Positions 749-61,565 of a stretch of DNA of 64,000 nucleotides are shown piece after piece. Under the pieces are notes generated by a model. The model made no database searches. It saw only the letters and a list, made by a program, of their open reading frames with translations, and was not told the origin of the DNA. Position 1 is the first letter of the stretch. Each line of letters begins with the position of its first letter. The DNA is taken from sequence record NC_061421.1; one strand, written 5' to 3'. A program made the translations under genes and the position numbers.

Positions 749-843
749 CGTGGTATTCCTCTGCGGGCGGAGTGAGTATCTTTACATATTAGAAAACGCA
801 CTGTAAAGTTTAAAAGATTACGTACTGCTAGTTATAGAGCATA

Positions 844-868
844 GAGAGAGGGGTAAAACCCCTCTCTC
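844..868 (-). terminator. Perfect 10-bp hairpin, immediately followed by TATG on the minus strand
   Basis: GAGAGAGGGG-TAAAA-CCCCTCTCTC; CATA at 840-843 on +. Confidence 0.75.
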
Positions 869-874
869 CTTTGG

Positions 875-1036
875 TTAGTGTCGTTGCTTTTCGTCGGTGA
901 CTGTCGGGAGGTTTACTCCTTTATACTTGCATTCTTTAAAGACATTACGCAAGAATCGCTGACGTGTCTCTTCACGTTGTTTTTCAACGCGTTCATCGCC
1001 AGGGTATCTGGCAATATAGCATGGACGTTTAACCAT
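875..1036 (-). CDS. Small basic hypothetical protein, 53 aa (below the ORF-track cutoff)
   Basis: Manual translation MVKRPCYIARYPGDERVEKQREETRQRFLRNVFKECKYKGVNLPTVTDEKQRH; SD-like AAAGGTG just upstream; fills the gap between 1075 and the hairpin at 844-868. Confidence 0.6.
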   Translation of the reverse strand: MVKRPCYIARYPGDERVEKQREETRQRFLRNVFKECKYKGVNLPTVTDEKQRH

Positions 1037-1074
1037 AGTTTCACCTTTAGTTTTCGTGGGCTTTACCGGCCCGG

Positions 1075-1764
1075 TTAGACTGTGGGGTTACTTTTGTTCG
1101 CTATCCACTGACTTGTAAGTGTTTTGAGTGCATTGCCGTTGTCGACATACGTACTCAAATTACTGTTGTCAGTGTATACTACATTACGGTCCTCGCTATT
1201 GGTAGTAGCGGAGACAATGACTAAATTTCCCTTGACCAATGGATTGGCCGTCAAAATAGTACGAAGCGTGTAACCCACGATTTCGATAAGATCAGACAAC
1301 TGCTTGTAACGGTACTGTCCATCATTGGTCGTGTCCTCTTCGTAATCTTTACGGAAGGATTCGAATAAATAGTAACCTACCCATAACGGTGCCACCGCAT
1401 AGATACTCGGATTGAAAACGTTATCAATCCGTGGCAGGAGACTATACTGATACAGCGTCGTCACGCCATAACCCAGATTTGCCAGTGTGTTAAGAACATA
1501 GTTATCTGGGAGGGCGTTGATCTTGGCTTCAATACCCGAAGCGCTATTCGGGAGTGCAACCTTTAAATGCGCAATAAGTTTTGCACGAATATCGGTTTCA
1601 CGTAAATTGATTGGCCAAGATAAAAGTGGGACCTGTTTAAACGGTTTGTTGACACCTGCGAAATCCCCAACGACAGGGGTGACTACCCAAGGCGTTAAAA
1701 GATTGACCGATTGGACAATCGCAGGTAAAGTACTGTCATCGTAAATTCCAACGGATGTCGGCAT
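1075..1764 (-). CDS. Conserved hypothetical (probable virion) protein downstream of the prohead protease
   Basis: 229-aa ORF with SD GAGGGG; position next to the protease as in phiKZ/SPN3US-like phages (recalled synteny). Confidence 0.7.
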   Translation of the reverse strand: MPTSVGIYDDSTLPAIVQSVNLLTPWVVTPVVGDFAGVNKPFKQVPLLSWPINLRETDIRAKLIAHLKVALPNSASGIEAKINALPDNYVLNTLANLGYGVTTLYQYSLLPRIDNVFNPSIYAVAPLWVGYYLFESFRKDYEEDTTNDGQYRYKQLSDLIEIVGYTLRTILTANPLVKGNLVIVSATTNSEDRNVVYTDNSNLSTYVDNGNALKTLTSQWIANKSNPTV

Positions 1765-1840
1765 TACATTCCCCTCTTCGTAATAAATATAACTTATATT
1801 AAATCGGATTTAACCGTTACATAGAGTAACAAGATAAAAT

Positions 1841-1868
1841 AAAAAGAGGAGCAAATGCTCCTCTTTTT
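1841..1868 (-). terminator. Intrinsic terminator-like hairpin after the protease gene
   Basis: AAAAAGAGGAGC-AAAT-GCTCCTCTTTTT. Confidence 0.8.
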
Positions 1869-1869
1869 A

Positions 1870-2616
1870 TTACCATTTAGAGACAAGACCCGTTTTACCA
1901 GAAATAAACGGAGTACGATCCATCTGACGAATAGCATCAACCGTGGCTTTGAAACTCGACTCCACGGAGACCAAACTTTGGTCATTGGCCATACTGCGAA
2001 TAATCGCTGGTTGTACCGGGACAATCAGTGCCGACTCGCAAGACGGTGACATGTATTTGTTTGCGCAAGACAAACCGGGTTCGTTTACGAGATCCCAGGT
2101 AATAATGTTATCGACGTATTTACGAACCTTACCGCCAACCACTCTGTCGGTCGCCATACTGCGAATACTGAACGCCAGATTCTCGTCTGGGTTAGACATG
2201 ATTTTCTCAAAATCTTCACGTCTGGCTCCCGTAGAACAAATCTCACCCATGATGGCGCAAATGCGCTGACCGTTAGGCAGAACGAAATTCGGCACAACCC
2301 AAACCTTGCGGATATGAAATGCCCAGTTACGTTCATCAATGGTGTGGATACGTTGAATGAATTTACGATAGTCGGCGTAATCGTATTCTTTGGGGTGACC
2401 CCATTCGCCGCGTAAATACCCTTCTCTCACGCGTTTCTGGAAAAGACCATTCTCCGCTAATATACGCTCAACACGTTGCTGGTCATATACCGCACCAATA
2501 CTGTTGTCGAACTCTAACGCCCCTAAAATAACTTCAAGGTAGTTGTTGTCCAGACGTTTAATATTCCCTACTCGGTTTACACCTTTCAGTGCTGTTACCT
2601 CAAATGACATCCCCAT
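1870..2616 (-). CDS. Prohead (head maturation) serine protease, phiKZ gp175 / SPN3US gp245 type
   Basis: Catalytic-triad motifs LRGEWGHP (His), LAFSIRS (Ser), ITWDLVNEPG (Asp); located next to vRNAP genes. Confidence 0.92.
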   Translation of the reverse strand: MGMSFEVTALKGVNRVGNIKRLDNNYLEVILGALEFDNSIGAVYDQQRVERILAENGLFQKRVREGYLRGEWGHPKEYDYADYRKFIQRIHTIDERNWAFHIRKVWVVPNFVLPNGQRICAIMGEICSTGARREDFEKIMSNPDENLAFSIRSMATDRVVGGKVRKYVDNIITWDLVNEPGLSCANKYMSPSCESALIVPVQPAIIRSMANDQSLVSVESSFKATVDAIRQMDRTPFISGKTGLVSKW

Positions 2617-2619
2617 GGC

Positions 2620-3348
2620 TTACCACCGCACAATATTAGAATGATTCATGAACTCATACGATAGCAGACCCGCCTTACGTTCTTTGGCCTGATTGAATTC
2701 GCTTTCCGATAGCGGGAACATTTCAACCTGACTTTGATCGAAAGGTTCTTCTTTATACTTTTCCAGGGCAGGGATAATCATTCGATAAAACCCTCTTTTC
2801 AGATCGAAGAAGGGTGAGAATTTTACCGATGGGCTGTCAACCTGAATCAGTATTCGGGTTTCAATGGCTTTACTGTAGTCGTCTTTGATGACTCTGAGTT
2901 CATCGATGAAACACTTTCCGACAACACGGGAGGGGTATCGTTGATCTTCAGTGTCGACGTTGACAAGCCATCTTTCTTCTGACCACTCTGCCATAGGGCA
3001 GATGACTTTCGTCGGACGGAGCGAACCTTCAACGGACAACGCATAAATCGTATACCCTCCTAACCATTCGTCCTTGCCCGCGCAATGTGCTTTACTGTCC
3101 ATGAAATCCCGCAACGCCACGCCATAACCCCGTAAGCAATCAATGATTGTAATCCCGGTACAAACCCGTTTGACGGATTCATCTTCTCCGTTCATGGTTC
3201 GTTGGATCTCCCGAGGAATAAAAACCGGGATATTGGGATTAGGAGAGATATGGTAAAGTGTGCGGTGATGAGTATCGACTTCGAGCTCATTAACGGCGTG
3301 CTCTTGTTGTTTACTGATGAAACTTTGAAGTCTCTCGTATGGGCTCAT
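2620..3348 (-). CDS. Hypothetical protein with an ADP-ribosyltransferase-like N-terminal motif pattern
   Basis: LYHISPNPNIPVFIPR...ED...RVCTG...CL...EERWL; C-terminal LSYE followed by a short tail ending in W. Confidence 0.55.
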   Translation of the reverse strand: MSPYERLQSFISKQQEHAVNELEVDTHHRTLYHISPNPNIPVFIPREIQRTMNGEDESVKRVCTGITIIDCLRGYGVALRDFMDSKAHCAGKDEWLGGYTIYALSVEGSLRPTKVICPMAEWSEERWLVNVDTEDQRYPSRVVGKCFIDELRVIKDDYSKAIETRILIQVDSPSVKFSPFFDLKRGFYRMIIPALEKYKEEPFDQSQVEMFPLSESEFNQAKERKAGLLSYEFMNHSNIVRW

Positions 3349-3349
3349 G

Positions 3350-4075
3350 TTACGCCCTCAGTAAACGTTCGATCGGTTGGGTTACTTCGTTCGGGTTAAC
3401 AATAGCCGAATCCAGACCATCTCCGGTATAACTCCCCGAAATTTTCGCAGTGGTATCGGAAGACCCATCCACAACGTTACGTAAAGGTATCCAGGTGAAC
3501 GGCGTAGTACGCAGCTCACTGTAGCTGTGGATATGCTCACGTAAAGGAACTTTACGGTTACTTTCAATACGGGCTAACTGGGCGATGATCATTTCACCGA
3601 TAGTCGGTGTCGCAACCAACTTTGTTCCCGTATACTCTTCGGTTTCCGCAAAGAAGCTACCTAACGTAATGTAGTTGTAAAAGAACGGAATCCTTCCTCG
3701 TGCTAAGATCTCTTCGAACAGGTAATAAAGAAGACCGTTGTCTTTTACCAAATCGATGCTTTTAACCACCGTGCTACCGGGACGGAAATAAAAGTCATAA
3801 TAGCTTCGTCCAGCATATTCGAGTTGACGAATTTCCGTCGGTGTAATTTCCATCATACTCGGGGTGGTAGCAACCGCAAAATCACCCGCTTCGCTACAGA
3901 TAGCAAAGAAGCCGATGATCATAATGCGTTTGCCCATACTGATTAACTGCTTCGCGCGAAAGGACTCTTGGATCACAATCCGGCAGCCGGTCGTGGTGAC
4001 CAGACTGCCGTTTGGGAGTTCACGTAAAGTCGCTTGCAGCGCATCGGCATTGTGTTTCCACTGCGCGATATTCAC
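3350..4075 (-). CDS. Virion RNA polymerase beta'-like C-terminal subunit (SPN3US gp244-like)
   Basis: C-terminal LRNVVDGSSDTTAKISGSYTGDGLDSAIV resembles the beta'/RPB1 C-terminal region; lies between the protease and the other vRNAP genes. Confidence 0.7.
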   Translation of the reverse strand: MNIAQWKHNADALQATLRELPNGSLVTTTGCRIVIQESFRAKQLISMGKRIMIIGFFAICSEAGDFAVATTPSMMEITPTEIRQLEYAGRSYYDFYFRPGSTVVKSIDLVKDNGLLYYLFEEILARGRIPFFYNYITLGSFFAETEEYTGTKLVATPTIGEMIIAQLARIESNRKVPLREHIHSYSELRTTPFTWIPLRNVVDGSSDTTAKISGSYTGDGLDSAIVNPNEVTQPIERLLRA

Positions 4076-4086
4076 TGTTCGACTCC

Positions 4087-5619
4087 TTAGTACACGGTGG
4101 CGTCATCCTGTTCGATAATACCCACTTTCTCTGCCTGTTTAAAAGTCAGGACATCGAAGTTAGCCACAAGCCATTTTGCCAGATAACGGATGGCCGCAGT
4201 ATAGGCAGCAGTCGTGCCGTCCTGATCGGAATCCTGCATTTCACTTTCTACGATATCGATAATGTCTTCGGCATCGATGAACGTGAAGATGTGCTGGCAG
4301 ACTTTCTGTTTGACCAATTCGAACAGATTGGGATCGTTGTCGATGTTCCAATTCGCGTAGAACTTACCGGACTTCAGATCTTCCATCACTTTGTTCAGTG
4401 CCGCTTCTTTACTGAACCCGCTTGGCAGTTGATCTTCATTGAGATTGTTCAGCGCTTGCGCCAGTTCCGGTACGAAACAGTTCGAAAGACGTTTCAGGAA
4501 CGTGTCATGGGAATAACGTTGACGCTGAATCTCAAGCGCCTGCCAACGTTTCAGGTTTTGCTGGTCGTTGGCAATAAACTGACCCAGTAAACGTTGACCA
4601 CCGCGCGGGTCTAACACGCCACCGATCACGCTTTCTGGCGTCAGTCCCTGAGAAAGTCCCTGGCGATATACCGGACCGAATACCACAATTTCCGCGTCTT
4701 CTGCAGAGGTAGCTACTTGGCTTTTTCCGGTGAAACGAATGATCATCTGACCGCGGCGGTTACAACCACTTAGCCAGCCCAGACCATTTTTGATCAGATA
4801 GCCGTATTGCAGCTTCATCGCATTGATCGCCGCCTCGTACTCGGGTAAAGTCATACCCGTACCCGGGAGCGGGTCTTGTGACATACTGTCAACCAGGAAA
4901 TAGACCACGATGCCCAGATCGGTCAGAGAAGCATCACTGAATTTCCCTTCGCAACGTTGACCGTCTTTTTGTTGGACGAGTTCTGAAACGAAGCGAGTCA
5001 CTGGGCAGATTGGGGTAATCGCACAGTTGCGGAAGAGGACGTTGTAAATGGAGACAATCGTATCGGCGCCATATTTTGCGATCGCGTCGGCCAATGCGTC
5101 GTCCAGTTCACTCACGCCAGTTTTCATCCCGTCAATTAAATCTACGTCCGTTTTTTCCGGGGCGTTTTTAATACGGGTAAAAAGAGGTGCGTTGGGTTTG
5201 AACTGGGCAAACGTATCAACTACGTAAGGGTCGTAAATGATCGGTGCAGGATCGTATTGCGTAATAGTGAACTCTTTTGGTTCTACGCCTTTCATCCTGT
5301 CCAGAATTTTACCCGTTACATCAGTGATCAGTGGTACTACCGTGTTGCGGACATACCCGATCTGACGCAGCAATGCGCCGCCAACAACTTCAACCGCGCC
5401 AGCGACTGCACCTTCATGCGGTTCAACCATCCCGATGGTACGTTGGGAGTTATCAAACAACACCTGGTCATACGCTTCCAGTGAAGGTTTGTGACTCTGG
5501 AAGAACGGGAGCGATTCAGCAACCGGGCTGAATAACAGAGACCCGGTGCGCGGGAAAAGGAATAACCCTTCGTTACTGACTACCGTCTTCGCGAGGGCAA
5601 TAGACTTTTTGTTTAACAT
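4087..5619 (-). CDS. Internal head/ejection-type virion protein (SPN3US gp243-like by position)
   Basis: 510 aa; candidate protease site PSLE|A near the N-terminus; TGATG coupling to the upstream gene; synteny. Confidence 0.6.
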   Translation of the reverse strand: MLNKKSIALAKTVVSNEGLFLFPRTGSLLFSPVAESLPFFQSHKPSLEAYDQVLFDNSQRTIGMVEPHEGAVAGAVEVVGGALLRQIGYVRNTVVPLITDVTGKILDRMKGVEPKEFTITQYDPAPIIYDPYVVDTFAQFKPNAPLFTRIKNAPEKTDVDLIDGMKTGVSELDDALADAIAKYGADTIVSIYNVLFRNCAITPICPVTRFVSELVQQKDGQRCEGKFSDASLTDLGIVVYFLVDSMSQDPLPGTGMTLPEYEAAINAMKLQYGYLIKNGLGWLSGCNRRGQMIIRFTGKSQVATSAEDAEIVVFGPVYRQGLSQGLTPESVIGGVLDPRGGQRLLGQFIANDQQNLKRWQALEIQRQRYSHDTFLKRLSNCFVPELAQALNNLNEDQLPSGFSKEAALNKVMEDLKSGKFYANWNIDNDPNLFELVKQKVCQHIFTFIDAEDIIDIVESEMQDSDQDGTTAAYTAAIRYLAKWLVANFDVLTFKQAEKVGIIEQDDATVY

Positions 5620-5810
5620 CAGACAATCCCCTCTTGTACACGGCGGGCGGCGATAGCAGCGCCAATAGCGGCGGCCAGATCTTCTTCGATGTTCGCACCG
5701 TCTGGAATTCTGAGATCTTCGCTGCGCGCATTCAGCATGACGCGGCGGCCCACCTCAAGAATATTCGCAACGCTGGTTTGCGCAATTTCTTGCAAGCCTT
5801 CATTATTCAT
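5619..5810 (-). CDS. Small hypothetical (probable virion) protein, 63 aa
   Basis: SD-like AAGG upstream; its stop overlaps the start of the 510-aa gene. Confidence 0.65.
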   Translation of the reverse strand: MNNEGLQEIAQTSVANILEVGRRVMLNARSEDLRIPDGANIEEDLAAAIGAAIAARRVQEGIV

Positions 5811-5854
5811 CTTCTTAACCTTATTTTACAAAGCGCTTTGGAAAGTAACGGGTG

Positions 5855-5881
5855 ACGAGGGGAGTACGTTTCTCCCCTCGT
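5855..5881 (-). terminator. Hairpin downstream of vRNAP beta-N
   Basis: ACGAGGGGAG-7 nt-CTCCCCTCGT. Confidence 0.6.
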
Positions 5882-5890
5882 TGTACACAA

Positions 5891-8800
5891 CTATTCGCTA
5901 TCGTACGCTTTCAGCATTTCCTGCTGAATGTTTTCAATAAGAATGTTGCCCATCCCCAGAAGTAAAGCGGAGTTTACAATACGTGCGTTAATTGCACGGT
6001 AGGAAAATTGTAAATCAATATCCCACGGTTGACCGCCTGGTAAGACTGGTGTTGTCGTCCGACAGATTCCTTTATAGACACCACTCACTACGGACTTCTT
6101 CTGGTTACCAACAACTAACTTATCGCCATCGCCCATACCGCGCTGATGGGTAATGTAGATACGAATCGCCATCATATCAATCTCTAATGGCATCCCGTCA
6201 ATACGGCTTGGGGTAAAGACCTGACCCGTTAAGGCGGTTTCGGTCCCCAATAACTTAGCATTCTTTGCCCGAATGCTGTCATACTTGTCAGCGATCTTAC
6301 GCACCGAATCCGACATATCTTCTTTTTCACCGAAATAGAAGACCTCGATCTTTTCAACCTTACCAACGTGTTTTGCACGTGGTGCCGGGTTACCTAAACG
6401 TTTCAACGTTTCCATTGTCGATTCGTCAAAGTAGTCGAAGGTTGCGGAAACTTCGTCCTCTATAAAAGCCAGCGTGTCTTCATTATCGACGTGCTGTCCT
6501 TCACTGACCAAGTTACGGATGGCCTGATTGAAGTTCACCATCAGCACACGAGTGTGCGTTACCAAGGTAGTCATCTTTTGCGATAAGCGTTCCGAAATCA
6601 AACTGGCATCTTCGAACGTGTTATTGTTCTCGACCAGCGCAATGTTCGTTGTTACGCCATTCTTAAAAGCGACCTGAGTAGGTTCACGCCAATCTCGCGC
6701 AAAGAATCCAGGGTGGTAAGCTACGACATGGTCTTTATCTACCTTTGCCCCAACCTCAAGATCGCATACAACTTCATGCGGCTCAGTGTGGCCGGTGACG
6801 ATACCAAATTTACGCCCTAACTCAATCTGGTCTTCGCCAAGTTCAGGGTCGTCGTACTTGATCACAACATGCCCTTTGGTTTTTTCGGTGATTGTCCCCG
6901 GACCTTTCGCCACAGAAGAGAAAAGGTCATCGGTACGCTGCGCCATCATTAACTCGTACCCTGTCCGGATATAACCCAAATCGTCTCCGACGGAATAGCG
7001 TTTATGGCTGCTCTGTATACCGATAAAGTTTACGCGCTTAGGGTCGTCGTATGTTGAAAAAGGCGAGACCAGTGCACTTGTAGATAGTACGTTACTGAAC
7101 CCTTTCTCTTTGCTGAGATCAGTCTCAGTCCGTGCCGTCCCGCGCAGACTTGTCAGGTTAGGGTTAGCCGATAAGTAACAGTTAATCCCAACGTCGCCGT
7201 TATCCACCGAGGATTCAGAACGTATTCCGATGTCACTAGGATGGAAGGCACGTGTACGACGAGTCATGGATCGTTTTCCGCGACCACCCGTACCAGAGTA
7301 AGTCAAGTTCTCTTTCTCTTTAAGGTTCTGTATCGGGTTGGAATCCTCTACCAAGGAAACAGAAGGGTCTTTCTGAATCGCTGAAAGGATTTCAAACGGC
7401 GGGAAATCCAACTGCGCCCTTGAACTCAAATTACTCGAGCTTTGTCTTCTCACGGCCTCAGCGAACGTTCTGTAGACCGCACCCGCCATCCTTTCATAGC
7501 CTTTGAAGAGTGAGCCCTGTGAACTCAGGTCACTTGGGTATTCATCGGTTGCAAGATAGAAGGCGGCTTTTTTCAGTAGCGGAATAAACTCGGTCGGTTC
7601 ATTCATCGCCTCCAGGTTTTCTTCAGCGATAGGGTCAATGAACAGCGCTTTCAGGTTACTGAACTCGTACAGATATCTTCCTGATAGCTGCATGTCAGAC
7701 AGTAAAGCGTTATAGTTGTCTTGGTTGTCGAGTTCCGCGACCGAATAGTTTTTCAGTGCGTTTTTCCACAATTGGAGAGAGCTATAAATCAAAACATCCG
7801 GATGAGTAATACGAGGGATCCGCCAAATCTCATCGGCAAAAACGATTTCAAATGTATTTTGATCCGGTTGAACTCGAGCGCCCTTCGTTCTACGTTGGGG
7901 TTTAATCTCCATCTTATCAACGAACTGAGTGAAACCCTCAAGATACATTAAGACGATGGCCAACGGGAACTCTTGTCCTAATATTGAAATTGTGACAAGT
8001 TCATTAGGGCGGTTTACAGGGTCTGCACCAAAGAGTTTTGAGATATGACCCAATCTCTCTGGACCGACCTGAAGATAACCCTCTCTGTCCATGGTAACGG
8101 TAGACCTGCCTCGTTTACCTACCGGGATATTTCCTTGCCCATTCCAATCCGGAAAATTCTTCCCAATGTTCGGATAGTCAAAGAAAAAGTTCATTCCCGC
8201 TGCGTCAAACGAAATGACTTCCTTCGCTATTGCCGAATAGGTACGGGGAACGGGTTGTGAATCCGTGAATGAATTTCCGTAAACGATCTCGGCCATCAAT
8301 GGTGGATTAGAAAGCGCCGCAACGTTCATAGCGTCTTTTAACCATTCACCGTAATCGTGGCGACGTTTATCGCTACGGTCTACGAAGAGCTTTCCGTAGT
8401 AAGTTGAGAGCGCGACTGTGGATGGAGAAATTTTGCGGATCGGTTTATCGAAACGCAGTTTACGCATAAAGTATTTGATACCGCCAACTTTATACTTACC
8501 ATTTTTATCCACTACCGGAAGCTGGAAACGCACTGTCGAAGGTGCACCTTTTACCGGGGAGATCTTCACGGTGTAATCGTAAAGGTCATTCAGCGCATCG
8601 ACCTGACGTTCGACTTTGAAGTCAGTGATGGCGTATCCGGCCTTCTGGAATCCGAGCACCAGATTGATCACATCTTTCTGCATGACTTCTTCGACATACT
8701 TTCGATCGTAATCGATCAACGTACTCTTGAGCATACTTTTATCTTTGACGTGAGCAATATCAACCACTTCTTTCGGTTTAAAGTCCCAGACAATTTCCTT

Positions 8801-10369: not shown

Positions 10370-10385
10370 TACAGTGAAACTCCTG

Positions 10386-12017: not shown

Positions 12018-12063
12018 TGTTTAAATCCTGTTAACAGATGATTAACCTTTTTAAGGGAACAAA

Positions 12064-20875: not shown

Positions 20876-20910
20876 AAAAGAGAGAGAGGGATTTACCCTC
20901 TCTCTCTTTT
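20876..20910. terminator. Bidirectional terminator at a convergent junction
   Basis: AAAAGAGAGAGAGGG-ATTTA-CCCTCTCTCTCTTTT. Confidence 0.8.
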
Positions 20911-21306: not shown

Positions 21307-21334
21307 GAATAGAGAGCGCGTGCGCTCTCTATTC
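21307..21334 (-). terminator. Hairpin after the 355-aa gene
   Basis: GAATAGAGAGCGC-GT-GCGCTCTCTATTC. Confidence 0.7.
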
Positions 21335-21336: not shown

Positions 21337-22404
21337 TTATGCCAGTGCAATATACGAGTATTGTTGTTTTGCCAGGGTCAATATGTCGTTATCGCTATAG
21401 TGTTGGACAACGGCGATTTGATACGCGTACTCCGGTAAAGTGTTCAATACTGTTTTGGCATTACTGGAGATACTCCGGAAGACATCTAGTCGATGACCTG
21501 TCGGTGTGAATTGGGAACTATTCCACCGTGGGTCAATCATAGCTAAAACTGTTACCAGTTCAGTGGCATAGCTGCTGTAGCTATTAGCGTCCACAACTTT
21601 ACCGAACTTATAATTTTGCAAAACCTGTTGAACCGCATCAGGGGCTTTCTGAAGAATGTACGTCCCACCCAATGACTCAACCATCGTTTTGACAAGGGTG
21701 AGGTTCCCTGATGCCAGAACTGTCGGTAGGCTGTCCCCCATGGCTGCAGTGAGAGTTGGATTACTGGAATCACTACTGTAAACTGAAGAGACTACATTAG
21801 ACAGCCCCAAATATGCCGCCTGTTGCAATATAGAGGACTTTAACGCAGTGATCGATAGTTTGTCTTCTAAGTTCTGGAACGTGTACTCTGTGCTATTCAG
21901 GAGTGTTTTAACGCTATTGATCAAATTATTAGCGCCCAGTATATCACCTGCCGAATTTAACTGGTAAACAGCGCCATTGATATCGTTAAACGTACTGTCG
22001 ACCGTATTATTGATTTCTTGTAGGGTTGATGTCGCACCGTTGATGACCTCGTCGGAAATCCCTTTCACAGTGGAAATAGACTGACCGATCTCGTTACTTA
22101 ACTGGGAAGTAAACGCTGTAACATCTTGTTTGACCTGACTGGCTTGAGTTAAGAGGTCATTTAATGACCCTAGGTCGCTGATCTTGGTATTCAGGAGATA
22201 GTTTTTAGTATCTGACAATTTCCCTAGTAACGTGTTTTTCATGTTACTGAGAACATTGGCGGTGGTCTTCCCATAACCGTCCACTGCCACCATGGAATCT
22301 TTAACCCCAGTTGCTACCAACGAACTTTGGGTCTGTGCGGCGGCTTTTGCGGTGCTCGCTGAGTTACTCAACGTATCAACGAAGTTACTGACGTCTAACG
22401 CCAT
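21337..22404 (-). CDS. Hypothetical virion (tail-associated?) protein, Ser/Thr/Ala/Gln-rich helical N-terminus
   Basis: 355-aa ORF with SD AGGGG; conserved position near the tape measure/hub genes (recalled synteny). Confidence 0.65.
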   Translation of the reverse strand: MALDVSNFVDTLSNSASTAKAAAQTQSSLVATGVKDSMVAVDGYGKTTANVLSNMKNTLLGKLSDTKNYLLNTKISDLGSLNDLLTQASQVKQDVTAFTSQLSNEIGQSISTVKGISDEVINGATSTLQEINNTVDSTFNDINGAVYQLNSAGDILGANNLINSVKTLLNSTEYTFQNLEDKLSITALKSSILQQAAYLGLSNVVSSVYSSDSSNPTLTAAMGDSLPTVLASGNLTLVKTMVESLGGTYILQKAPDAVQQVLQNYKFGKVVDANSYSSYATELVTVLAMIDPRWNSSQFTPTGHRLDVFRSISSNAKTVLNTLPEYAYQIAVVQHYSDNDILTLAKQQYSYIALA

Positions 22405-22688: not shown

Positions 22689-22726
22689 AGCGGGTACGCT
22701 CCAAAAAAAAATAGATTAAGGTGCAT

Positions 22727-22760
22727 AAAGAAGAACGGTGTCTTTACACCGTTCTTCTTT
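22727..22760 (-). terminator. 15-bp perfect hairpin, followed by TATG on the minus strand
   Basis: AAAGAAGAACGGTGT-CTTT-ACACCGTTCTTCTTT; CATA at 22724-22727. Confidence 0.8.
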
Positions 22761-24143: not shown

Positions 24144-24159
24144 TCAATAGAGTGATATA
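24144..24159 (-). promoter_or_regulatory. Putative early (vRNAP) promoter TATATCAC-TC-TATTGA
   Basis: One of three copies of a 16-nt motif; core matches the phiKZ early consensus TATATTAC with one mismatch. Confidence 0.65.
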
Positions 24160-24708: not shown

Positions 24709-24744
24709 ACAAACAGAGGGAAGCGTTTGCTTCCCTCTGTTTGT
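24709..24744. terminator. 16-bp hairpin at a convergent junction (dispersed repeat family)
   Basis: ACAAACAGAGGGAAGC-GTTT-GCTTCCCTCTGTTTGT. Confidence 0.8.
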
Positions 24745-28693: not shown

Positions 28694-28801
28694 CGTTGAT
28701 CCTTGTTTCTGAATTAGGAATTGTCTTCATTACAATTAGGAGAGGTATTTAATTTTATGTTAAACCCTTCTACATTACACTGAGTACATAAGGTACAGAT
28801 T

Positions 28802-29674: not shown

Positions 29675-29680
29675 ACCATA

Positions 29681-29714
29681 AGAGAATGAGAGAGGTTTCC
29701 CTCTCTCATTCTCT
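29681..29714. terminator. 15-bp hairpin at a convergent junction, followed by TATG on the minus strand
   Basis: AGAGAATGAGAGAGG-TTTC-CCTCTCTCATTCTCT; CATA at 29677-29680. Confidence 0.8.
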
Positions 29715-29716: not shown

Positions 29717-30094
29717 TTATGGTGCAACCGATAACGTGTGTAAATTGACAATCTGTTTTAACTCTTGACGCAGTATGAAACTGCTGTCTTCCACACCGTC
29801 CTTTAGCCAGTGCGGAATCATCTCTTCAAAGTAATTGGCAACCTTTTCGCTGGGCAATTTACGAATGATCTCGCACTGCTCATCGTTCCACAAGATTTCA
29901 GGGAGAATAGTACCTAACAATAATCCCCGAGAATCCTGCGCCAAATTAAGTCGCCGATTCATTGTGCACGCCAATCTCTGACATCCTCCAGATCGCCCGG
30001 AAAGCAACGTGTAGAATGACCCTAAGATCAGCAAACGTCTGCCCTTAGGCGTGAAGAGTTTTGGCCCTAAGGCCGCTAAGAGTAGTTTGATCAT
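29717..30094 (-). CDS. Hypothetical protein, 125 aa
   Basis: ATGA overlap with the RNase H stop. Confidence 0.7.
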   Translation of the reverse strand: MIKLLLAALGPKLFTPKGRRLLILGSFYTLLSGRSGGCQRLACTMNRRLNLAQDSRGLLLGTILPEILWNDEQCEIIRKLPSEKVANYFEEMIPHWLKDGVEDSSFILRQELKQIVNLHTLSVAP

Positions 30095-34162: not shown

Positions 34163-34194
34163 CTCCCCTTCTCCGCTAAAGCGGAGAAGGGGAG
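34163..34194. terminator. 14-bp hairpin at a convergent junction
   Basis: CTCCCCTTCTCCGC-TAAA-GCGGAGAAGGGGAG. Confidence 0.8.
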
Positions 34195-34819: not shown

Positions 34820-35143
34820 TTACCCCCGAGTATTGGTTTCTTCCAACCCGCTCAAAACGGTCTCCAGATCATCCAGGAACAACGTTTCATTTCCGATATA
34901 GATCGGGAAGCTGGGTTCTACTTCGACCTTCTCAACGAGTTTGGCGAGCTCTGGCATGATCATCGGCGTATAGCCGAGAAACTTCACTACCTTTTTCGCG
35001 GCGAGGGTCTGAACGGTTTGTTCGTAGCTCCTTACTTCAGCACGAACAGCCTGAATATAAGGTTTGTTTTCTGCGCTCAGCTCGTCACGAAGGGCCGAAA
35101 GTGCAGTGACAATTTTCCCGGCCTCAGAATCACTAAAACGCAT
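34820..35143 (-). CDS. Hypothetical early protein
   Basis: ATG at 35143 with AAAGGGA SD, overlapping the upstream stop. Confidence 0.7.
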   Translation of the reverse strand: MRFSDSEAGKIVTALSALRDELSAENKPYIQAVRAEVRSYEQTVQTLAAKKVVKFLGYTPMIMPELAKLVEKVEVEPSFPIYIGNETLFLDDLETVLSGLEETNTRG

Positions 35144-35802: not shown

Positions 35803-35818
35803 TCAATAAGGTGATATA
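35803..35818 (-). promoter_or_regulatory. Putative early (vRNAP) promoter TATATCAC-CT-TATTGA
   Basis: Second copy of the 16-nt motif, directly after the sbcC terminator. Confidence 0.7.
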
Positions 35819-35828: not shown

Positions 35829-35851
35829 AGACTGGAAACGACTTCCAGTCT
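35829..35851 (-). terminator. Terminator after sbcC
   Basis: AGACTGGAA-ACGAC-TTCCAGTCT with a following T-run on the minus strand. Confidence 0.65.
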
Positions 35852-39408: not shown

Positions 39409-39444
39409 AAACAAACAGGGAGGCAAACGCCTCCCTGTTTGTTT
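39409..39444. terminator. 16-bp hairpin at a convergent junction (same family as 24709)
   Basis: AAACAAACAGGGAGGC-AAAC-GCCTCCCTGTTTGTTT. Confidence 0.8.
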
Positions 39445-43596: not shown

Positions 43597-43661
43597 GATT
43601 ATCCTCAATGTACCATCGGCCGATGGATCAACATACCAATACTCATCAAAAAGGACCAGAC

Positions 43662-45514: not shown

Positions 45515-45544
45515 CAGACAGAGAGGCGTTTGCCTCTCTGTCTG
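45515..45544. terminator. 13-bp hairpin at a convergent junction (same family as 24709/39409)
   Basis: CAGACAGAGAGGC-GTTT-GCCTCTCTGTCTG. Confidence 0.8.
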
Positions 45545-46787: not shown

Positions 46788-46799
46788 GTTTAATCTCTT

Positions 46800-47390: not shown

Positions 47391-47429
47391 CTGTCCCTAC
47401 CTCATTATAAATGTTGATTCCATAAAATA

Positions 47430-47457
47430 AGAAAGAGGGTCCGAGGACCCTCTTTCT
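47430..47457 (-). terminator. 13-bp hairpin followed after 5 nt by TATG
   Basis: AGAAAGAGGGTCC-GA-GGACCCTCTTTCT; CATA at 47421-47424. Confidence 0.8.
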
Positions 47458-47466
47458 ACCTGGTGA

Positions 47467-48612: not shown

Positions 48613-48626
48613 TCAGTCATCCTCTT

Positions 48627-49544: not shown

Positions 49545-49609
49545 TTTTAAGTCCTATGCAATAAACGAGAAAAGGGTCACGCCGAAACAGGACGGCGAAT
49601 GTCATAAAA

Positions 49610-49641
49610 AGCGAAGGAGAGCAGAAACGCTCTCCTTCGCT
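49610..49641 (-). terminator. 13-bp hairpin followed after 3 nt by TATG
   Basis: AGCGAAGGAGAGC-AGAAAC-GCTCTCCTTCGCT; CATA at 49603-49606. Confidence 0.8.
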
Positions 49642-49653
49642 ATATTTTATCGA

Positions 49654-50196: not shown

Positions 50197-50229
50197 AATA
50201 TCGTTTTCCTTTTCTGTTTACTACGTATC

Positions 50230-51072: not shown

Positions 51073-51112
51073 TATAGACTCCGTTAAAATAAAATTCGAT
51101 TATGTCATAACA

Positions 51113-51136
51113 AAAAAGGCGGTCTCCCGCCTTTTT
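51113..51136 (-). terminator. Hairpin with GAGA loop and T-tract, followed by TATG
   Basis: Minus strand AAAAAGGCGG-GAGA-CCGCCTTTTT-TGT-TATG. Confidence 0.8.
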
Positions 51137-51151
51137 CATTTATTGTACGTA

Positions 51152-53596: not shown

Positions 53597-53660
53597 CGAG
53601 CAGTCTCCTCAACAGAACAATCGATTCCCCTTTTCAGAGTGAGAGAAGGATTCTGAATTT

Positions 53661-56450: not shown

Positions 56451-56458
56451 AACAAAAA

Positions 56459-56513
56459 AAAGGATCTTTCGATCCTTTCTCCCCTACAGAGAGCCAATGC
56501 TCTCTGTAGGGGA
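56459..56513. terminator. Two tandem hairpins at the portal convergent junction
   Basis: AAAGGATC-TTTC-GATCCTTT and TCCCCTACAGAGAGC-CAAT-GCTCTCTGTAGGGGA. Confidence 0.8.
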
Positions 56514-56521
56514 TTTATTAT

Positions 56522-58726
56522 TTAGTCGTGGGTACGTAAGACGAGAACAAAGCTGTCAGACTTCTGATCCTGGTAATCTTTCCGAACTTCAAACCAGCTG
56601 TTATCTGCAAACCAGATATAGTTAAAGCACGCGATGTCGCTGTTAGCATTGAAGGTCAACGCCTTTAATGCGCTATGAAGTTTAGGAGAGGAGAAAGAGG
56701 AAACTAACAGCGGTTCGTTAGGTTTCTCTTCGCCGGTGATCGACAGTTTCAGGTCATTCACTAACACGGGTGCAATAACCATGTTAATGCGTTTAACGAC
56801 ATAGATCGTTCTGGCGTCAGTGCTTTCGCTTACACCTGCACCAACAATCCCGGAACCGACTTTGAACATCTGGAAATTGCTGATGTGGAATGCAAATGCT
56901 GCGGCAAGTTTCGCCGCGAACTCCGCCCCACGTTTTTCCGTGACATCGTCATACAGGGTTGCCAGATCTTCAAACGCTTCGATACGTAAACGGCATCCCA
57001 TTTCCAAACGGAAGATGCTGTTAACCAAATCAACGATATGACGTTTCGCTGCGACGACCAGTGCTGCCGGAACACGCTCGATAACCCGATTGAAGTTGTC
57101 GTGAATATCTTGCAGGTATTTCAGCTCTACGCCGTCTTTGAAATTGAGACCGGTCATGTCAAGATGACGCAGAACATAGTTTGCTTCTTCTGCAGTCGCA
57201 CAAGTCATGATTGGTTCATACAGCTCTGCGCCCGTTTGGAACGTATTGAAGTTGGTGTGGAGATGTCCGCTTTGATCGTTAGTTGCTTCCTCGCAACGTG
57301 ACATTTCTTGCAGACGGATATGACCCATCCCGAAACCTTTTACGATCTCATCTGAACGCAGGATTTGATCAAAGGTGATTGACCCGGCGTCAGGGGCATC
57401 AGGGATAACTTTTTGCAGTTCTTCTGGTTGTCCCTCGTTCTCTTCGCGAATACTTTTAACAACGGCTTCGTACTCTTCGCGGTTCTCGTCGCGGAGTTTA
57501 CGGTTTGCCGTGACGTTGAAACGCGGAGCGCCAAGCGCGTCGCGTATTTCACTGTTTTTCGGGTGGAAGCGGTAATTCGCTTCTTTTGCCCCGACAATGT
57601 TTAACTGGTGAATTTTACGATCCACTTCTGCTACCTCTTCTGGGTTAAGGGGCTCGTAACGGACGAAACGATAACCGTCTTTCGTGATGTCCCATACCGG
57701 GCGAACGGAATCAGCTTCCCACACGATTGTATCATTACGAAGTTGTTCGTTCGGATGCAGCGGAATAGAAAGTACAACTTCGAGGTCCGTCAGATCAATA
57801 CGCCCAGACTTTACATCTTCCGCAGTAATCGGGCCGGTGGCCAGGAGATTACCTTTACTGGAACGTTTTTCGACGACAGGGGCTTTGGTTGAGGTCGTCT
57901 GACGCGAACGAATATTCTCCGGTTCAACGCGCTCGTACGCCGGACGGTTAGCTCTCCGCGGATCAGGGGTGCTAAAAGCCTCACCCATCTTTTCCTCGAA
58001 GGCGTCGTCAATCTGCTGGCGATTTTCTTGCGCCTGCTGTTCCATCGCTTCCCGACGCTGCGCTGCTGCAACATATGCGTTTTGACCCCGGCGATTTTTG
58101 CGACTGGCGTTGATATCCGGTGCCTGCGTGTGACGGTCTGAGCCATACCCATTAGCACGCGGACGAGTCGGGATCGGAGACTCATAACGCCCGCGGCGTT
58201 CTTCATTGTACCCCCGACGATCATCATAACGCCCTCGCGTATCGCGATCTTCGTAACGCCCACGGTGTTCCGGTCCACGGCCAAATCCGCCACGACCGCG
58301 ATCATCTCTGCTGTACCCCCGACGATCATCATCGTAACGACGACGATCAAGTTCTTCCGCGCGACGTTCTAATGCGCGACGAAGTTGGTTGGCGTTATCG
58401 GCCAGATAAAGAATTTCGTCTTCGGTGCGGCGGTCAGGAATCTCCGCACGACGGTCTTCTTTGATCAAAGCACCGGCAAAATACGCGGCCAGTTCGATGG
58501 CGCCTTCCCAGAGGTCACGTGGTTCTTTTCTTGCTTCGATCAACATGTCCATTGAGTCGAAGACAAAATTGATCAAATTTTCTCGGGTCGTACGAATTTC
58601 CCGACAAACATCATCGAGATAACCAAAAATCATGTCGTTACGCCCAAGTTCACTGATACGCTCGTCTAAGAAGCGGGCCAGATTACGTTCCGTGAACTCC
58701 ATATCATCTCTGCGACGATTGAACAT
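56522..58726 (-). CDS. Conserved hypothetical protein (734 aa) with an Arg/Asp/Gly/Tyr low-complexity region
   Basis: Third gene of the nvRNAP beta-N operon; RRYDDDRRGYSRDDRGRGGFGRG... segment. Confidence 0.75.
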   Translation of the reverse strand: MFNRRRDDMEFTERNLARFLDERISELGRNDMIFGYLDDVCREIRTTRENLINFVFDSMDMLIEARKEPRDLWEGAIELAAYFAGALIKEDRRAEIPDRRTEDEILYLADNANQLRRALERRAEELDRRRYDDDRRGYSRDDRGRGGFGRGPEHRGRYEDRDTRGRYDDRRGYNEERRGRYESPIPTRPRANGYGSDRHTQAPDINASRKNRRGQNAYVAAAQRREAMEQQAQENRQQIDDAFEEKMGEAFSTPDPRRANRPAYERVEPENIRSRQTTSTKAPVVEKRSSKGNLLATGPITAEDVKSGRIDLTDLEVVLSIPLHPNEQLRNDTIVWEADSVRPVWDITKDGYRFVRYEPLNPEEVAEVDRKIHQLNIVGAKEANYRFHPKNSEIRDALGAPRFNVTANRKLRDENREEYEAVVKSIREENEGQPEELQKVIPDAPDAGSITFDQILRSDEIVKGFGMGHIRLQEMSRCEEATNDQSGHLHTNFNTFQTGAELYEPIMTCATAEEANYVLRHLDMTGLNFKDGVELKYLQDIHDNFNRVIERVPAALVVAAKRHIVDLVNSIFRLEMGCRLRIEAFEDLATLYDDVTEKRGAEFAAKLAAAFAFHISNFQMFKVGSGIVGAGVSESTDARTIYVVKRINMVIAPVLVNDLKLSITGEEKPNEPLLVSSFSSPKLHSALKALTFNANSDIACFNYIWFADNSWFEVRKDYQDQKSDSFVLVLRTHD

Positions 58727-58756
58727 GTGATTTTACTCCTGTGAGATTATGAAAAA

Positions 58757-60367
58757 TTAATTACTGATTTCGTCTTGTACTTGGTCAAGGAGCTCAATGT
58801 TTTTCGGGTTGCGGATAAACTTCCCGGATTCGTCGGTGTGGGCGTAAACGTTTAGCCGTCCACGACCGTCGGGAATACCTTTGGCGAAATTACACACTGA
58901 GCCACACTCCATGATACTGGCGTGGAGGTGATATGCTGCTTCATTAGGTTTGAAGCTTTTTGTCTTCCCTTTACCAATAACTGCGTTGACTTGACGAATA
59001 GCGATACATGTATGCTTGAAGATCATGTTGTCGCCGGGGTATTGTACCGAGTTCAATTCGCCGTGACCTCGCTGAATGCCTAAGAAAGCATTCGTTGTCA
59101 GGAAACTTGAAAGTTTCCAAGTCAGACGTTTAAGTCGGAGAGTTTTCTGTTCTTTTTCCAGTTGCCATGTAAAGTTGAAAATACTCTCTGTAATGCCCGA
59201 TAAAGCATAGCGCTTCACTAAGAGATACTTACCCCACATGTTACCGGAGTTATCGTCTTTAAGACGATCCTGAATCGTTTCCAGGATATGGATAAACAAC
59301 TCGTACAAGTCGTTTGCCATAATCCCTTCCTGACGAAGGTTTTTCTTTGTTTCTCCGTCGACGTAACTGTCGAGCGACTTGAGATGAAGATCCACTTTGT
59401 TTAGCAGTTTCCCTTCGTTCTCATTTCCTTGGTGTAAAATGAACCCCATGATAATACGCCATGTATCAGGCATGTCGATATATTGCAAACTGAAACGGTT
59501 AGGATAACGGTCAACCACGTAGAAGAAATGCGTGGCCAGCAGTTTAACCCCAATGTTCTCTGTTGCTTCACGAGGAATGATCAACGCAAGGTTAGTCGGT
59601 TTCCAGTCGGAGATCGCTCGGCGGCGCTCTGGCGGCGGAAGACCTTGTGTAGTGTAAACCACATAGTCTTCTATTGGGTATTGCTCACGGAGGTTTGCGT
59701 GGTTCTCCTCTATCGCGACGTCAATCCCATAGAACCGTTTGAACGTCTCGGTCACTCCATATTTACAGAAGAGATAATGACCAAGGGTAGAATGGAACTG
59801 TTTACTTTTCCCTTCATTCCCTGTTTTTCCCTGATAGATGTTACCGTAAACAACGAAGGATGGGATAGATTCCCCGTCCTGTAGTAACGTATAGATACTC
59901 CGTTTTAACGTGAACTTGGCACGGAAAAGAATCGTGAAAAGATCGTTTCCGGCAACCGAGAACACCAGGTCGGCAAGAATAGGGTGAATCGTTGCACGAC
60001 TACCGCCGAGCCAGATAGTTCCTGCTTCTCGAACAAACGGGATGTTGATATTACGCTGGAGAATGTGCGTGCCCTGAAAACGTAACTTCATCTCGGACAT
60101 CACCGCATCGGTTTGTGCTATGTCGACTTCCCCTCTTCGTTCGGCTTTCTCATTTCCCTTGATAATCGCCTGTGCCTCTTCGTAAGGCGTTAACCGGCGC
60201 ATTCCTAAATACTCTACGTCGGGCGGGTAATCTTGCGCTGCACATTGCGCAATACGGTCGACATACGCCTCTGCGTCTTCCATGTCCTTTACAGCAAACC
60301 CGCCGGCGATATCCGGGTTAAACTTCGGTAAAGGATCTACGATATCATCGAACAGTACGTTATCCAC
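58757..60367 (-). CDS. Non-virion RNA polymerase beta-like N-terminal subunit (phiKZ gp123 type)
   Basis: P.FNPDIAGGF start, NIPFV, HYLFCKYGVTETF, LHASIMECGS...GRGRLNVY; second gene downstream of the capsid gene. Confidence 0.85.
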   Translation of the reverse strand: MDNVLFDDIVDPLPKFNPDIAGGFAVKDMEDAEAYVDRIAQCAAQDYPPDVEYLGMRRLTPYEEAQAIIKGNEKAERRGEVDIAQTDAVMSEMKLRFQGTHILQRNINIPFVREAGTIWLGGSRATIHPILADLVFSVAGNDLFTILFRAKFTLKRSIYTLLQDGESIPSFVVYGNIYQGKTGNEGKSKQFHSTLGHYLFCKYGVTETFKRFYGIDVAIEENHANLREQYPIEDYVVYTTQGLPPPERRRAISDWKPTNLALIIPREATENIGVKLLATHFFYVVDRYPNRFSLQYIDMPDTWRIIMGFILHQGNENEGKLLNKVDLHLKSLDSYVDGETKKNLRQEGIMANDLYELFIHILETIQDRLKDDNSGNMWGKYLLVKRYALSGITESIFNFTWQLEKEQKTLRLKRLTWKLSSFLTTNAFLGIQRGHGELNSVQYPGDNMIFKHTCIAIRQVNAVIGKGKTKSFKPNEAAYHLHASIMECGSVCNFAKGIPDGRGRLNVYAHTDESGKFIRNPKNIELLDQVQDEISN

Positions 60368-60388
60368 ACATATTCCCCTTATGCTCGT

Positions 60389-61384
60389 TTATAAAACAAC
60401 CGCTGCGCCCCACGCCGCTTTTTTCGCCAAAAAGGACAATAACCATTTTCCTGCTCTCAGCATTGTTGGGAGAATCGACTTAATAAACTCTCCGCCTGCT
60501 TTAATCCATGCAGAGGCGAGTTTCGCTTTCTTCTCTTTGTCTTCTTCCTTTTCAGGTTTCGCTTGTTTCAGCGCCATCTGAATCTCTTCGAGTTCCTTTA
60601 ACACAGATTCTCTAGAGGTGTGGAATTTGATTCCCAGTGGATTATTACCAGAAAGCGCATCTTCGAAACTGAAGAAACTCTTTGAGGCCAATAACCGATT
60701 CCCTCCCTTTATTCTACCATAGCTTTGCGCGGTAACGCCGTCAGGTTCGATTGACGCCCGTGAGACATTTACTTTCATCACTTGTCCGCCTAAAGCATAA
60801 TAGAGTCCTTCTACATAACGCTCTTTATCGACGGCATTCACCACAATACCTGACACCTTACTGATTTTGCAACCGGTATCGTCTTCGACAATATCGTGAA
60901 TACTTTCTTCACGATCAAGAAACGACGCTCGTGTGATCTTCATCCCTAAACCCGGGATGTTAACCTCCGAACCCAAATCGTTAAAGTCGTTTTCATCAAT
61001 CACGAAAACCATTCGATAACGATAATGGTTTCGCGAACGACGCTTCTCTTCTTCGAAATGTACCATGCAATGACCTTTCACGGCGTCATAAAGGCCAAAG
61101 CTCGCTTCAGCATAATTATTCTGAGGGTCGTCAATATTGACCGTGTCTGTGCAATAAATGACCGTCAGATGAATAATTAAACAATCGCGTAACTTCGCTG
61201 CGCCGTGGGAAAATAACTCATTGTCAGTCCCATCTGATTTTTGCACCGCCAAACCAAAACGATAATTGTTGGTCATCTCCACGGTAACGCAGAGATCACA
61301 ATTACCGGTTCGATAATCGTTTGCAGAAATCAGTGTCTCTAGGGGCATCTGTTCTTTTCTTGGATTCTCACGCTTATAAACCAT
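60389..61384 (-). CDS. Conserved hypothetical early protein with a C-terminal amphipathic helix
   Basis: First gene after the early promoter; C-terminus KLASAWIKAGGEFIKSILPTMLRAGKWLLSFLAKKAAWGAAVVL. Confidence 0.75.
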   Translation of the reverse strand: MVYKRENPRKEQMPLETLISANDYRTGNCDLCVTVEMTNNYRFGLAVQKSDGTDNELFSHGAAKLRDCLIIHLTVIYCTDTVNIDDPQNNYAEASFGLYDAVKGHCMVHFEEEKRRSRNHYRYRMVFVIDENDFNDLGSEVNIPGLGMKITRASFLDREESIHDIVEDDTGCKISKVSGIVVNAVDKERYVEGLYYALGGQVMKVNVSRASIEPDGVTAQSYGRIKGGNRLLASKSFFSFEDALSGNNPLGIKFHTSRESVLKELEEIQMALKQAKPEKEEDKEKKAKLASAWIKAGGEFIKSILPTMLRAGKWLLSFLAKKAAWGAAVVL

Positions 61385-61432
61385 CCTACACCTTATTTGT
61401 TAATTGGGAACGGAATACTTCTTACCGTACGT

Positions 61433-61476
61433 TTGACCTTTCTCAAGGGTCAATTTGGATCTTTCTCAAGGATCCA
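61433..61476 (-). promoter_or_regulatory. Tandem bulged GAGA-tetraloop hairpins in the 5' leader
   Basis: Minus strand TGGAT-CCTTGAGAAAG-ATCCA-AA-TTGAC-CCTTGAGAAAG-GTCAA. Confidence 0.65.
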
Positions 61477-61487
61477 TTAATACTCTC

Positions 61488-61503
61488 TCAATAAGGTAAT
61501 ATA
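61488..61503 (-). promoter_or_regulatory. Putative early (vRNAP) promoter TATATTAC-CT-TATTGA
   Basis: Exact phiKZ early core TATATTAC; upstream of an nvRNAP subunit operon. Confidence 0.75.
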
Positions 61504-61536
61504 GGTTTCAAGAAAATTCGATATGGCAAACATAGA

Positions 61537-61565
61537 CCCAGTCCCTCGCAATGCGAGGGACTGGG
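61537..61565 (-). terminator. GC-rich hairpin after the capsid gene, with no poly-U and followed by TC-TATG
   Basis: CCCAGTCCCTCGC-AAT-GCGAGGGACTGGG; CATA at 61531-61534. Confidence 0.75.

Follow-up and report, generated by a model that had tools for sequence, protein, structure and literature searches.

What do long intergenic hairpins that run almost directly into the tetranucleotide TATG do in the genome of a jumbo bacteriophage: do they end transcripts, start them, or both? The question is raised by a stretch of 64,000 nucleotides (nt) of record NC_061421.1 (hereafter, the window), which is 100% identical to the final 64 kb of the record of Klebsiella phage vB_KpM_FBKp24 (MW394391.1; 307,210 bp; record position minus 243,210 gives window position). 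Because its deposited annotation lists split multisubunit RNA polymerase (RNAP) genes (several β- and β′-like ones), a shell-protein-like gene and a tubulin gene, FBKp24 is a phiKZ-like, nucleus-forming jumbo phage. An earlier sequence-only reading of the window had listed eight hairpins followed by TATG on the minus strand and had proposed terminate-and-restart cassettes, hairpin-assisted late promoters or a phage-polymerase-specific terminator. The hairpin/TATG pairing is real and is a property of the phage family, not of the window alone. We conclude that the cassettes are probably phiKZ-type intrinsic terminators, part of them with a late promoter directly next to the hairpin, the hairpin itself serving to end the upstream transcript and not as a promoter element.

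Hairpins were detected by seed extension and scored with RNAfold; intergenic hairpins with a folding free energy (ΔG) of −13 kcal/mol or lower were considered strong. Greedy calling of the longest open reading frames mis-called small genes and was replaced by a codon-usage model, the calls of which match the deposited gene set of the window except for three start codons. The null model consisted of dinucleotide-preserving shuffles of the same flanks (30-nt flanks in the window test), complemented by a ranking of all 256 tetranucleotides. Genome-wide counts were made on the full records, with consecutive pieces joined unchanged, of FBKp24, phiKZ (AF399011.1), Escherichia phage Goslar (MK327938.1) and Klebsiella phage KpLz-2_45 (NC_061418.1), whose DNA is about 75% identical to that of FBKp24. 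Late gene blocks, i.e., blocks of structural genes, were drawn from the deposited annotation, and the deposited "promoter" features, which are the output of a generic predictor, were not used as evidence. Published start and termination sites of phiKZ were taken from the bioRxiv supplement tables of the phiKZ paper (for termination sites, rows T001–T076 of 133).

All eight hairpins and all eight minus-strand TATGs are present at the positions given in the sequence-only reading; at 22727, the last base of the stem doubles as the first T of TATG. Against the count of about 18 hairpins in that reading, we found 16 strong intergenic hairpins in the window and a weaker one at 35829–35851. Seven of the 16 minus-strand flanks carry a TATG that starts −1 to +5 nt past the stem, compared with an average of 0.63 and at most 5 in shuffled flanks (0/5000 reach 7), which bears out the claim that so many pairs are unlikely to arise by chance. 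The rough expectation of one occurrence per 200–250 nt that had accompanied this claim does not hold for TATG, which is rarer, at about one per 485 nt genome-wide and one per 280 nt in intergenic DNA.

A genome-wide count against shuffles, which the sequence-only reading had called for in this phage and its relatives, gave enrichment in FBKp24, KpLz-2_45, phiKZ and Goslar. With TATG allowed to start −2 to +9 nt past the stem, it is found in 31 of all 119 terminator-oriented flanks in FBKp24, whereas shuffles yield 7.5 ± 2.4 (0/1000 reach 31). These comprise 21 of 73 tandem junctions (shuffle mean 5.1) and 10 of 46 convergent gene ends (shuffle mean 2.5); on the non-transcribed side, 8 of 75 flanks contain TATG (shuffle mean 3.4). 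When tetranucleotides are ranked by positional enrichment past stems, TATG is first of 256 and TTAT second in FBKp24, KpLz-2_45 and phiKZ, the z scores for TATG being 9.6, 10.8 and 12.8, respectively. TATG and TTAT are both enriched in Goslar as well, where TATG occurs in 10 of 28 terminator-oriented flanks. Goslar has few strong intergenic hairpins (32), and its TATG stands mostly in TTATGC followed by a pyrimidine and G, closely resembling the tail in phiKZ.

The hairpins themselves have the hallmarks of terminators. Those in the window (ΔG from −14.5 to −29.8 kcal/mol) lie 1–34 nt past stop codons, 7 of the 16 being located between convergent genes, and six of the eight hairpins of the sequence-only reading coincide with ARNold-derived terminator features in the record. 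An Rfam scan of the 64-kb window returned no family match. KpLz-2_45 retains 57 of 61 mapped hairpins at a median sequence identity of 74% and with equal stability (−20.6 vs −20.7 kcal/mol), and side-by-side reading reveals compensatory stem changes between the two phages. Inspection of the sequence bears out the poor U-tails pointed out earlier at 844, 29681 and 61537; across FBKp24, TTAT is present in 55 and TATG in 31 of the 119 flanks, and at tandem junctions TAT continues with T or G in 55 of 70 cases. The phiKZ terminator motif derived by ONT-cappable-seq is a stem-loop followed by a TTAT region with G or T as the next base (PMC10914365), and 201phi2-1 has a terminator motif of the same kind (PMC10914365, PMC11512511). 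The phiKZ sites were named intrinsic terminators by the authors, and some of them terminated in a reporter in 201phi2-1. The terminator layer described here is thus already published for phiKZ as the stem-loop plus TTAT motif (PMC10914365).

As part of this tail, TATG is as frequent at convergent gene ends as elsewhere. The count at convergent ends, 10/46 in FBKp24, is 14/46 in KpLz-2_45 and 33/50 in phiKZ, and outside late tandem junctions the rate of TATG past FBKp24 hairpins is flat, at 15–23% in every context vs about 6% expected. Hairpin-adjacent TATGs at convergent ends turn over quickly: two are shared between the Klebsiella phages, three are found only in FBKp24 and seven only in KpLz-2_45 (2/12 kept). 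In phiKZ, TATG is present in 22 of 78 tandem flanks and, because the terminator module is two-sided, also in 28 of 80 opposite-side flanks. The register between stem and TATG is fixed at 0–2 nt in 50 of 55 phiKZ cases. According to the published tables, only 1 of 83 hairpin-adjacent TATGs in phiKZ lies within 3 nt of a mapped start site; by contrast, of the 25 hairpin+TATG termination sites within the table rows considered, 21 have their published 3′ end −1 to +3 nt from the G, the resolution of such long-read ends being about 2 nt according to the authors of the ONT-cappable-seq study. The idea of a phage-polymerase-specific hairpin+UAUG terminator is therefore supported, by the convergent ends and the phiKZ 3′ ends, as the base layer of the system.

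A mechanism can be proposed on these grounds. The putative terminators combine a GC-rich stem of 8–14 bp and a small loop with a tail that is short, poor in U and usually begins with (T)TAT and then G or T; once the stem is transcribed, the RNA hairpin would form, and a few nucleotides further on the polymerase would release the transcript in the (U)UAUG tail. A tail-type TATG sits 0–2 nt past the stem, usually with a pyrimidine next, and equally at convergent ends; in phiKZ, its position is that of the published transcript 3′ ends.

A second layer becomes apparent at late tandem junctions. In FBKp24, 14 of 27 such junctions contain TATG and 10 of 27 contain the extended form TATGAC, compared with 7/46 (p = 0.0013) and 1/46, respectively, for tandem junctions outside the late blocks and with 5/24 (p = 0.04) and 0/24 for late convergent ends. 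TATGAC stands a median of 30 nt ahead of co-oriented starts, at a loose distance of 0–9 nt from the stem, and is also found, with no hairpin, ahead of the major capsid, tail-sheath and other genes. Comparison of FBKp24 with KpLz-2_45 leads in the same direction. No tetranucleotide is better conserved than TATG across the 134 upstream regions that were aligned (51/71, or 72%, vs a background of 40%; rank 1 of 213), the ribosome-binding words included, and TATGA is kept in 25 of 28 cases; of 12 hairpin-adjacent TATGs mapped at tandem junctions, 8 are common to both Klebsiella phages.

The late promoter of the phiKZ non-virion RNAP (nvRNAP) is TATG with the start at G (PMC4666361, PMC12809450), and 46 of 66 phiKZ late starts have TATG within −5 to +2 nt of the published start. 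Among these 46 mapped late starts, G is followed by A in 17, vs 6 of 55 hairpin-adjacent TATGs, which fits a split into promoter-like TATG+A and tail-like TATG+pyrimidine. Most likely, then, TATGAC past a stem at a late tandem junction is an nvRNAP late promoter with the start at its G. Such TATGAC-type words lie 0–9 nt past the stem and 26–60 nt before the next start codon, at co-oriented late genes, and transcription would initiate afresh at their G. That a late promoter can adjoin a terminator within intergenic spaces of 80–110 nt is understandable, because it is read at the start site, without a sequence-specific upstream element.

Terminate-and-restart cassettes, the first of the earlier proposals, are consequently supported for the TATGAC subset, represented in the window by 49601–49606 and 51104–51109, which is directional, conserved in KpLz-2_45 and found hairpin-less before the major capsid gene; the proposal does not extend to all sites. 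Five TATGs of the window do lie about 30–90 nt before the next start codon, as had been stated (distances from G to start of 92, 36, 31–40, 59 and 34 nt), and for that at 61531 the start codon is 147 nt further on. A TATG on the coding strand at promoter distance is thus found at five of the seven sites, as well as at 1820, 63952 and elsewhere.

Two further properties of TATG were looked at. Sequence conservation on either side of conserved TATGs was tried as a start-site signature and rejected: there is no asymmetry (0.72 upstream vs 0.74 downstream), and the comparison is uninformative because it is conditioned on conserved regions. Within FBKp24 genes, TATG is under-represented, with an observed/expected ratio of 0.66 on the sense strand (rank 4 among under-represented words) and, on the antisense strand, of 0.55 (rank 1). 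A signal that is avoided would show such a deficit, yet the deficit is given no weight because codon usage and stop codons confound it.

The strongest competitor, possible though in our judgment unlikely, is that every hairpin-adjacent TATG, TATGAC included, is a termination signal and that late genes are served by read-through or by other promoters. The phiKZ data, with a single mapped start among the 83 hairpin-adjacent TATGs, 3′ ends falling on TATG and a fixed register, agree with this, as does the fact that TATG is no rarer at convergent ends. Termination alone, however, would not account for the concentration of TATGAC at late tandem junctions to the exclusion of late convergent ends, for conserved hairpin-less TATGAC ahead of the capsid, tail-sheath and other late genes, for the far better conservation of tandem than of convergent TATGs, or for the loose spacing between TATGAC and stem.

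Processing, in which an endonuclease would cut at the hairpin+UAUG so that the ends are neither terminated nor initiated, appears very improbable. Exonuclease trimming back to a stable stem would also produce fixed 3′ ends, but the classification of the phiKZ sites as intrinsic terminators and the reporter results in 201phi2-1 speak against it, and the context dependence of TATGAC and the hairpin-less conserved TATGs would be left unexplained.

We attach slightly less credence still to a hairpin-assisted promoter class, the second of the earlier proposals, in which the inverted repeat extrudes as a cruciform or otherwise helps to open the DNA at an information-poor TATG promoter. The highly non-random adjacency of hairpin and TATG is what recommends it, but late promoters do not need the hairpin. 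Among conserved TATGs 20–70 nt before starts, 25 are hairpin-less vs 12 with a hairpin, and the conservation of the two groups is similar (81% and 75%). The TATGAC of the capsid gene is hairpin-less in both Klebsiella phages. The phiKZ reference promoter P119L lacks a hairpin, and linear fragments that cover −53 to +51 support its activity; of the 66 late starts mapped in phiKZ, 57 are free of hairpins within 60 nt, and only 2 have one within 15 nt. The variable stem-to-TATG spacing in FBKp24, the absence of TATG from about 70% of equally strong hairpins, and the location of the hairpins directly past stop codons, convergent ends included, likewise disagree with a promoter function. As for an N4-like single-subunit virion polymerase, the deposited annotation lists only polymerase genes of the multisubunit type, although not every protein was scanned.

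Finally, the notion that T-rich terminator tails make TATG likely by composition alone has a negligible chance of being right and is ruled out by the shuffles: the tails are indeed T-rich, and T is commoner than G after TAT, but shuffling the same flanks never reproduced the counts, in the window or genome-wide, TATG ranks first among 256 tetranucleotides in three genomes, and G follows TAT 21 times vs about 8 expected from local base composition.

Terminators with an adjoining late promoter at part of the sites thus remain the reading we prefer, and several points weigh against it. Mapped phiKZ late starts near hairpins are rare (2/66), so the restart layer may be weaker than proposed, or specific to the Klebsiella lineage. 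FBKp24 and its close relatives are represented by sequence only, and transcript ends there are predicted; the late blocks, too, are defined by annotation and not by expression data. The base after G separates tail from promoter in a statistical sense and is no firm guide to single sites. The polymerase bears on the reading both ways. In its favor, gene 370 of the window (58757–60367, minus strand) encodes a homolog of phiKZ gp123, the β-like nvRNAP subunit (match to PDB 7ogp chain E, E = 2.4e-61; overall identity 29%), which binds TATG in the non-template strand (PMC12809450). Against it, of the 14 gp123 residues that form the TATG pocket, only six are identical in gene 370 by MAFFT, with a seventh in the HMMER alignment; three more are conservatively replaced. 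In addition, two TATGACs outside the window (record positions 34939 and 155984) lie past convergent terminators and are directed at the 3′ end of the gene opposite; were they active promoters, they would produce antisense RNA.

That the same four bases stand at transcript ends and at transcript starts either is coincidental, the tails being U-rich, or hints at the way in which these unusual polymerases terminate. As far as the literature was surveyed, we did not find the identity of tail word and promoter word discussed. We tentatively raise the possibility, with considerable reservation, that, for the nvRNAP of nucleus-forming jumbo phages, TATG signals where transcription ends as well as where it starts, the pocket in the β lobe catching TATG after the hairpin during elongation. 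If so, capture of TATG would pause the enzyme and stand in for the missing U-tract in termination, and at late junctions the released or stalled enzyme could restart at the same G, coupling termination to restart. The fixed 0–2-nt register and the 3′ ends on TATG in phiKZ are compatible with such a dual role, and the tail word is common to Pseudomonas, Escherichia and Klebsiella phages.

The specificity of late promoters in phiKZ-like phages is an acknowledged puzzle, since a four-base word cannot suffice, and reviews describe these promoters as not predictable from sequence. Many hairpin-adjacent TATGs appear to be terminator tails and should therefore be excluded from promoter searches; in the Klebsiella lineage, the promoter-like subset can be recognized by TATGA(C), gene context and conservation. 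The upstream hairpin does not appear to be the missing determinant. For FBKp24, the analysis provides a first map, grounded in evidence, of where terminators and late promoters are likely to lie, which we now describe for the window.

The clearest promoter-type sites are two late-promoter candidates on the minus strand. The TATGAC at 49601–49606 begins 3 nt past the hairpin that follows gene 365 (49610–49641, ΔG −24.6 kcal/mol, an annotated terminator) and 59 nt before the virion structural gene 364; together with the 5′ untranslated region (5′UTR) behind it, it is identical in KpLz-2_45. The TATGAC at 51104–51109 is likewise conserved there and lies 3 nt past the hairpin after the virion structural gene 367 (51113–51136) and 34 nt before the structural gene 366. 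A hairpin-less counterpart at 63950–63955 (minus strand) precedes the major capsid gene by 65 nt; similarity to KpLz-2_45 starts a few bases before this TATGAC and runs through the 5′UTR. Directly past it, at 63890–63945 (minus strand), the capsid-gene 5′UTR contains two adjacent hairpins, in a stretch that is identical in KpLz-2_45 while the upstream DNA has diverged.

The TATGs at 840, 29677 and 61531 are assigned to the tail type. The first (840–843) abuts the hairpin after gene 321 (844–868, minus strand, ΔG −19.7 kcal/mol) and is followed by C; the stem has compensatory substitutions in KpLz-2_45, where the TATG is kept. A hairpin-less TATG at 785–788 (minus strand), 37 nt before gene 320 and also kept, is the likelier promoter candidate for that gene. 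The hairpin at 29681–29714 is a bidirectional terminator between the convergent genes 343 (+) and 344 (−), a position that had been missed in the sequence-only reading; its two TATGs (minus 29677–29680, plus 29718–29721), both kept in KpLz-2_45, are of the tail type and are expected to have no promoter role because neither strand has a co-oriented gene downstream. The terminator after the major capsid gene 372 (61537–61565, minus strand) is followed after 2 nt by TATG (61531–61534) with T as the next base, 147 nt before gene 371; the stem changes in KpLz-2_45 are compensatory, and the TATG is conserved. Within the long 5′UTR of gene 371, small hairpins at 61438–61447 and 61461–61470 (minus strand) share a ten-base loop word, and the first is kept in KpLz-2_45.

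Two sites are undecided between tail and promoter. At 22724–22727, overlapping the hairpin after gene 335 (22727–22760, minus strand, an annotated terminator), the TATG stands at promoter distance (36 nt) from gene 334 and is conserved together with the following bases, the stem changes being compensatory, yet the next base is C. At 47421–47424, 5 nt past the hairpin after gene 363 (47430–47457, minus strand), the TATG lies in a TTAT-rich tail and is replaced by TATA in KpLz-2_45. The eighth pair is of yet another kind: the TATG at 1820–1823 (minus strand) is a separate downstream element, 14–17 nt past a hairpin with a U-rich tail after gene 323 (1838–1871, minus strand; by sequence reading and comparison with KpLz-2_45) and 56 nt before gene 322, and KpLz-2_45 has TATG at the same place though the flanks differ. 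Hairpin-less conserved TATGs are also found at 28756–28759 (plus strand), 43 nt before gene 343, and at 43632–43635 (minus strand), 36 nt before the tail-fiber gene 357.

The other hairpins of the window complete the set of putative terminators. On the minus strand, that after the RNAP β-like gene 328 (5855–5881) has no TATG, and that after gene 333 (21307–21334) has a tail beginning with TATT. Bidirectional terminators are located between the convergent genes 331 and 332 (20876–20910; T-tract tails, no TATG), 337 and 338 (24709–24744; minus-strand tail TATC, with TATG in KpLz-2_45), 348 and 349 (34163–34194; no TATG, with TATG on both sides in KpLz-2_45), 354 and 355 (39409–39444), and 359 and 360 (45515–45544). 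The convergent genes 368 and 369 are separated by a double hairpin, a back-to-back terminator without TATG (56459–56513), of which both hairpins are stable and kept in KpLz-2_45 with different sequences. The weaker hairpin at 35829–35851 (minus strand) follows gene 353 and has a tail TGTG, with TATG in KpLz-2_45; past it comes the word TATATCAC at 35811–35818.

The FBKp24 genome contains 27 copies of this word, TATATCAC; 22 of them are in intergenic DNA, which makes up 8% of the genome, and 18 are within 120 nt upstream of a co-oriented start. It is often positioned 10–25 nt past terminator hairpins in early and middle gene regions and is conserved in KpLz-2_45. It looks like the core of an early (virion-polymerase) promoter. 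In the window, it is present on the minus strand at 24152–24159 as well as at 35811–35818, with a coding copy at 21940–21947 (plus strand) and a related word at 61496–61503 (minus strand). A second word, the eleven bases GCATTTCGATT, is common to three plus-strand genes outside the window (record positions 96698, 118357 and 139790), starting 17–28 nt upstream of their TATG; these genes are divergently placed, and the word may serve them as an upstream element or as a site for a regulator.

How do these elements compare with known systems? Bacteriophage N4 has a single-subunit virion RNAP that uses small hairpin promoters of fixed sequence and spacing. The FBKp24 arrangement resembles it in that a phage polymerase would start a short distance downstream of a DNA hairpin, but its stems are 8–14 bp long, vary in sequence and distance and are located at gene ends, and its polymerases are multisubunit. 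The conjectured capture of TATG during elongation has a parallel in sigma factors, where the pocket that recognizes the promoter reads its motif again in the non-template strand and halts the polymerase; in jumbo phages, the reader would instead be a β-like subunit, and to our knowledge nothing of that kind has been shown for their polymerases. The closest relatives are the phiKZ elements. As in the phiKZ late promoter, a coding-strand TATG stands 20–70 nt before late and structural genes of FBKp24 without a conserved upstream element, whereas the Klebsiella lineage prefers the extended TATGA(C), and the FBKp24 promoters are predicted from sequence. A conspicuous feature of the Klebsiella phages is TATGAC at late tandem junctions, a variant that phiKZ seldom has (2/55). 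As in the terminators of phiKZ and 201phi2-1, a GC-rich stem-loop past the stop codon is followed by a short tail of (T)TAT and G or T, often two-sided at convergent genes; in FBKp24, the stems exceed the near-uniform phiKZ stem in length and in sequence diversity, and the two-sided form is weaker, with TATG in 8 of 75 antisense flanks compared with 28 of 80 in phiKZ. The terminator of the phiKZ capsid gene has the same layout as the FBKp24 site at 61537, and its published 3′ end lies 2 nt past the G.

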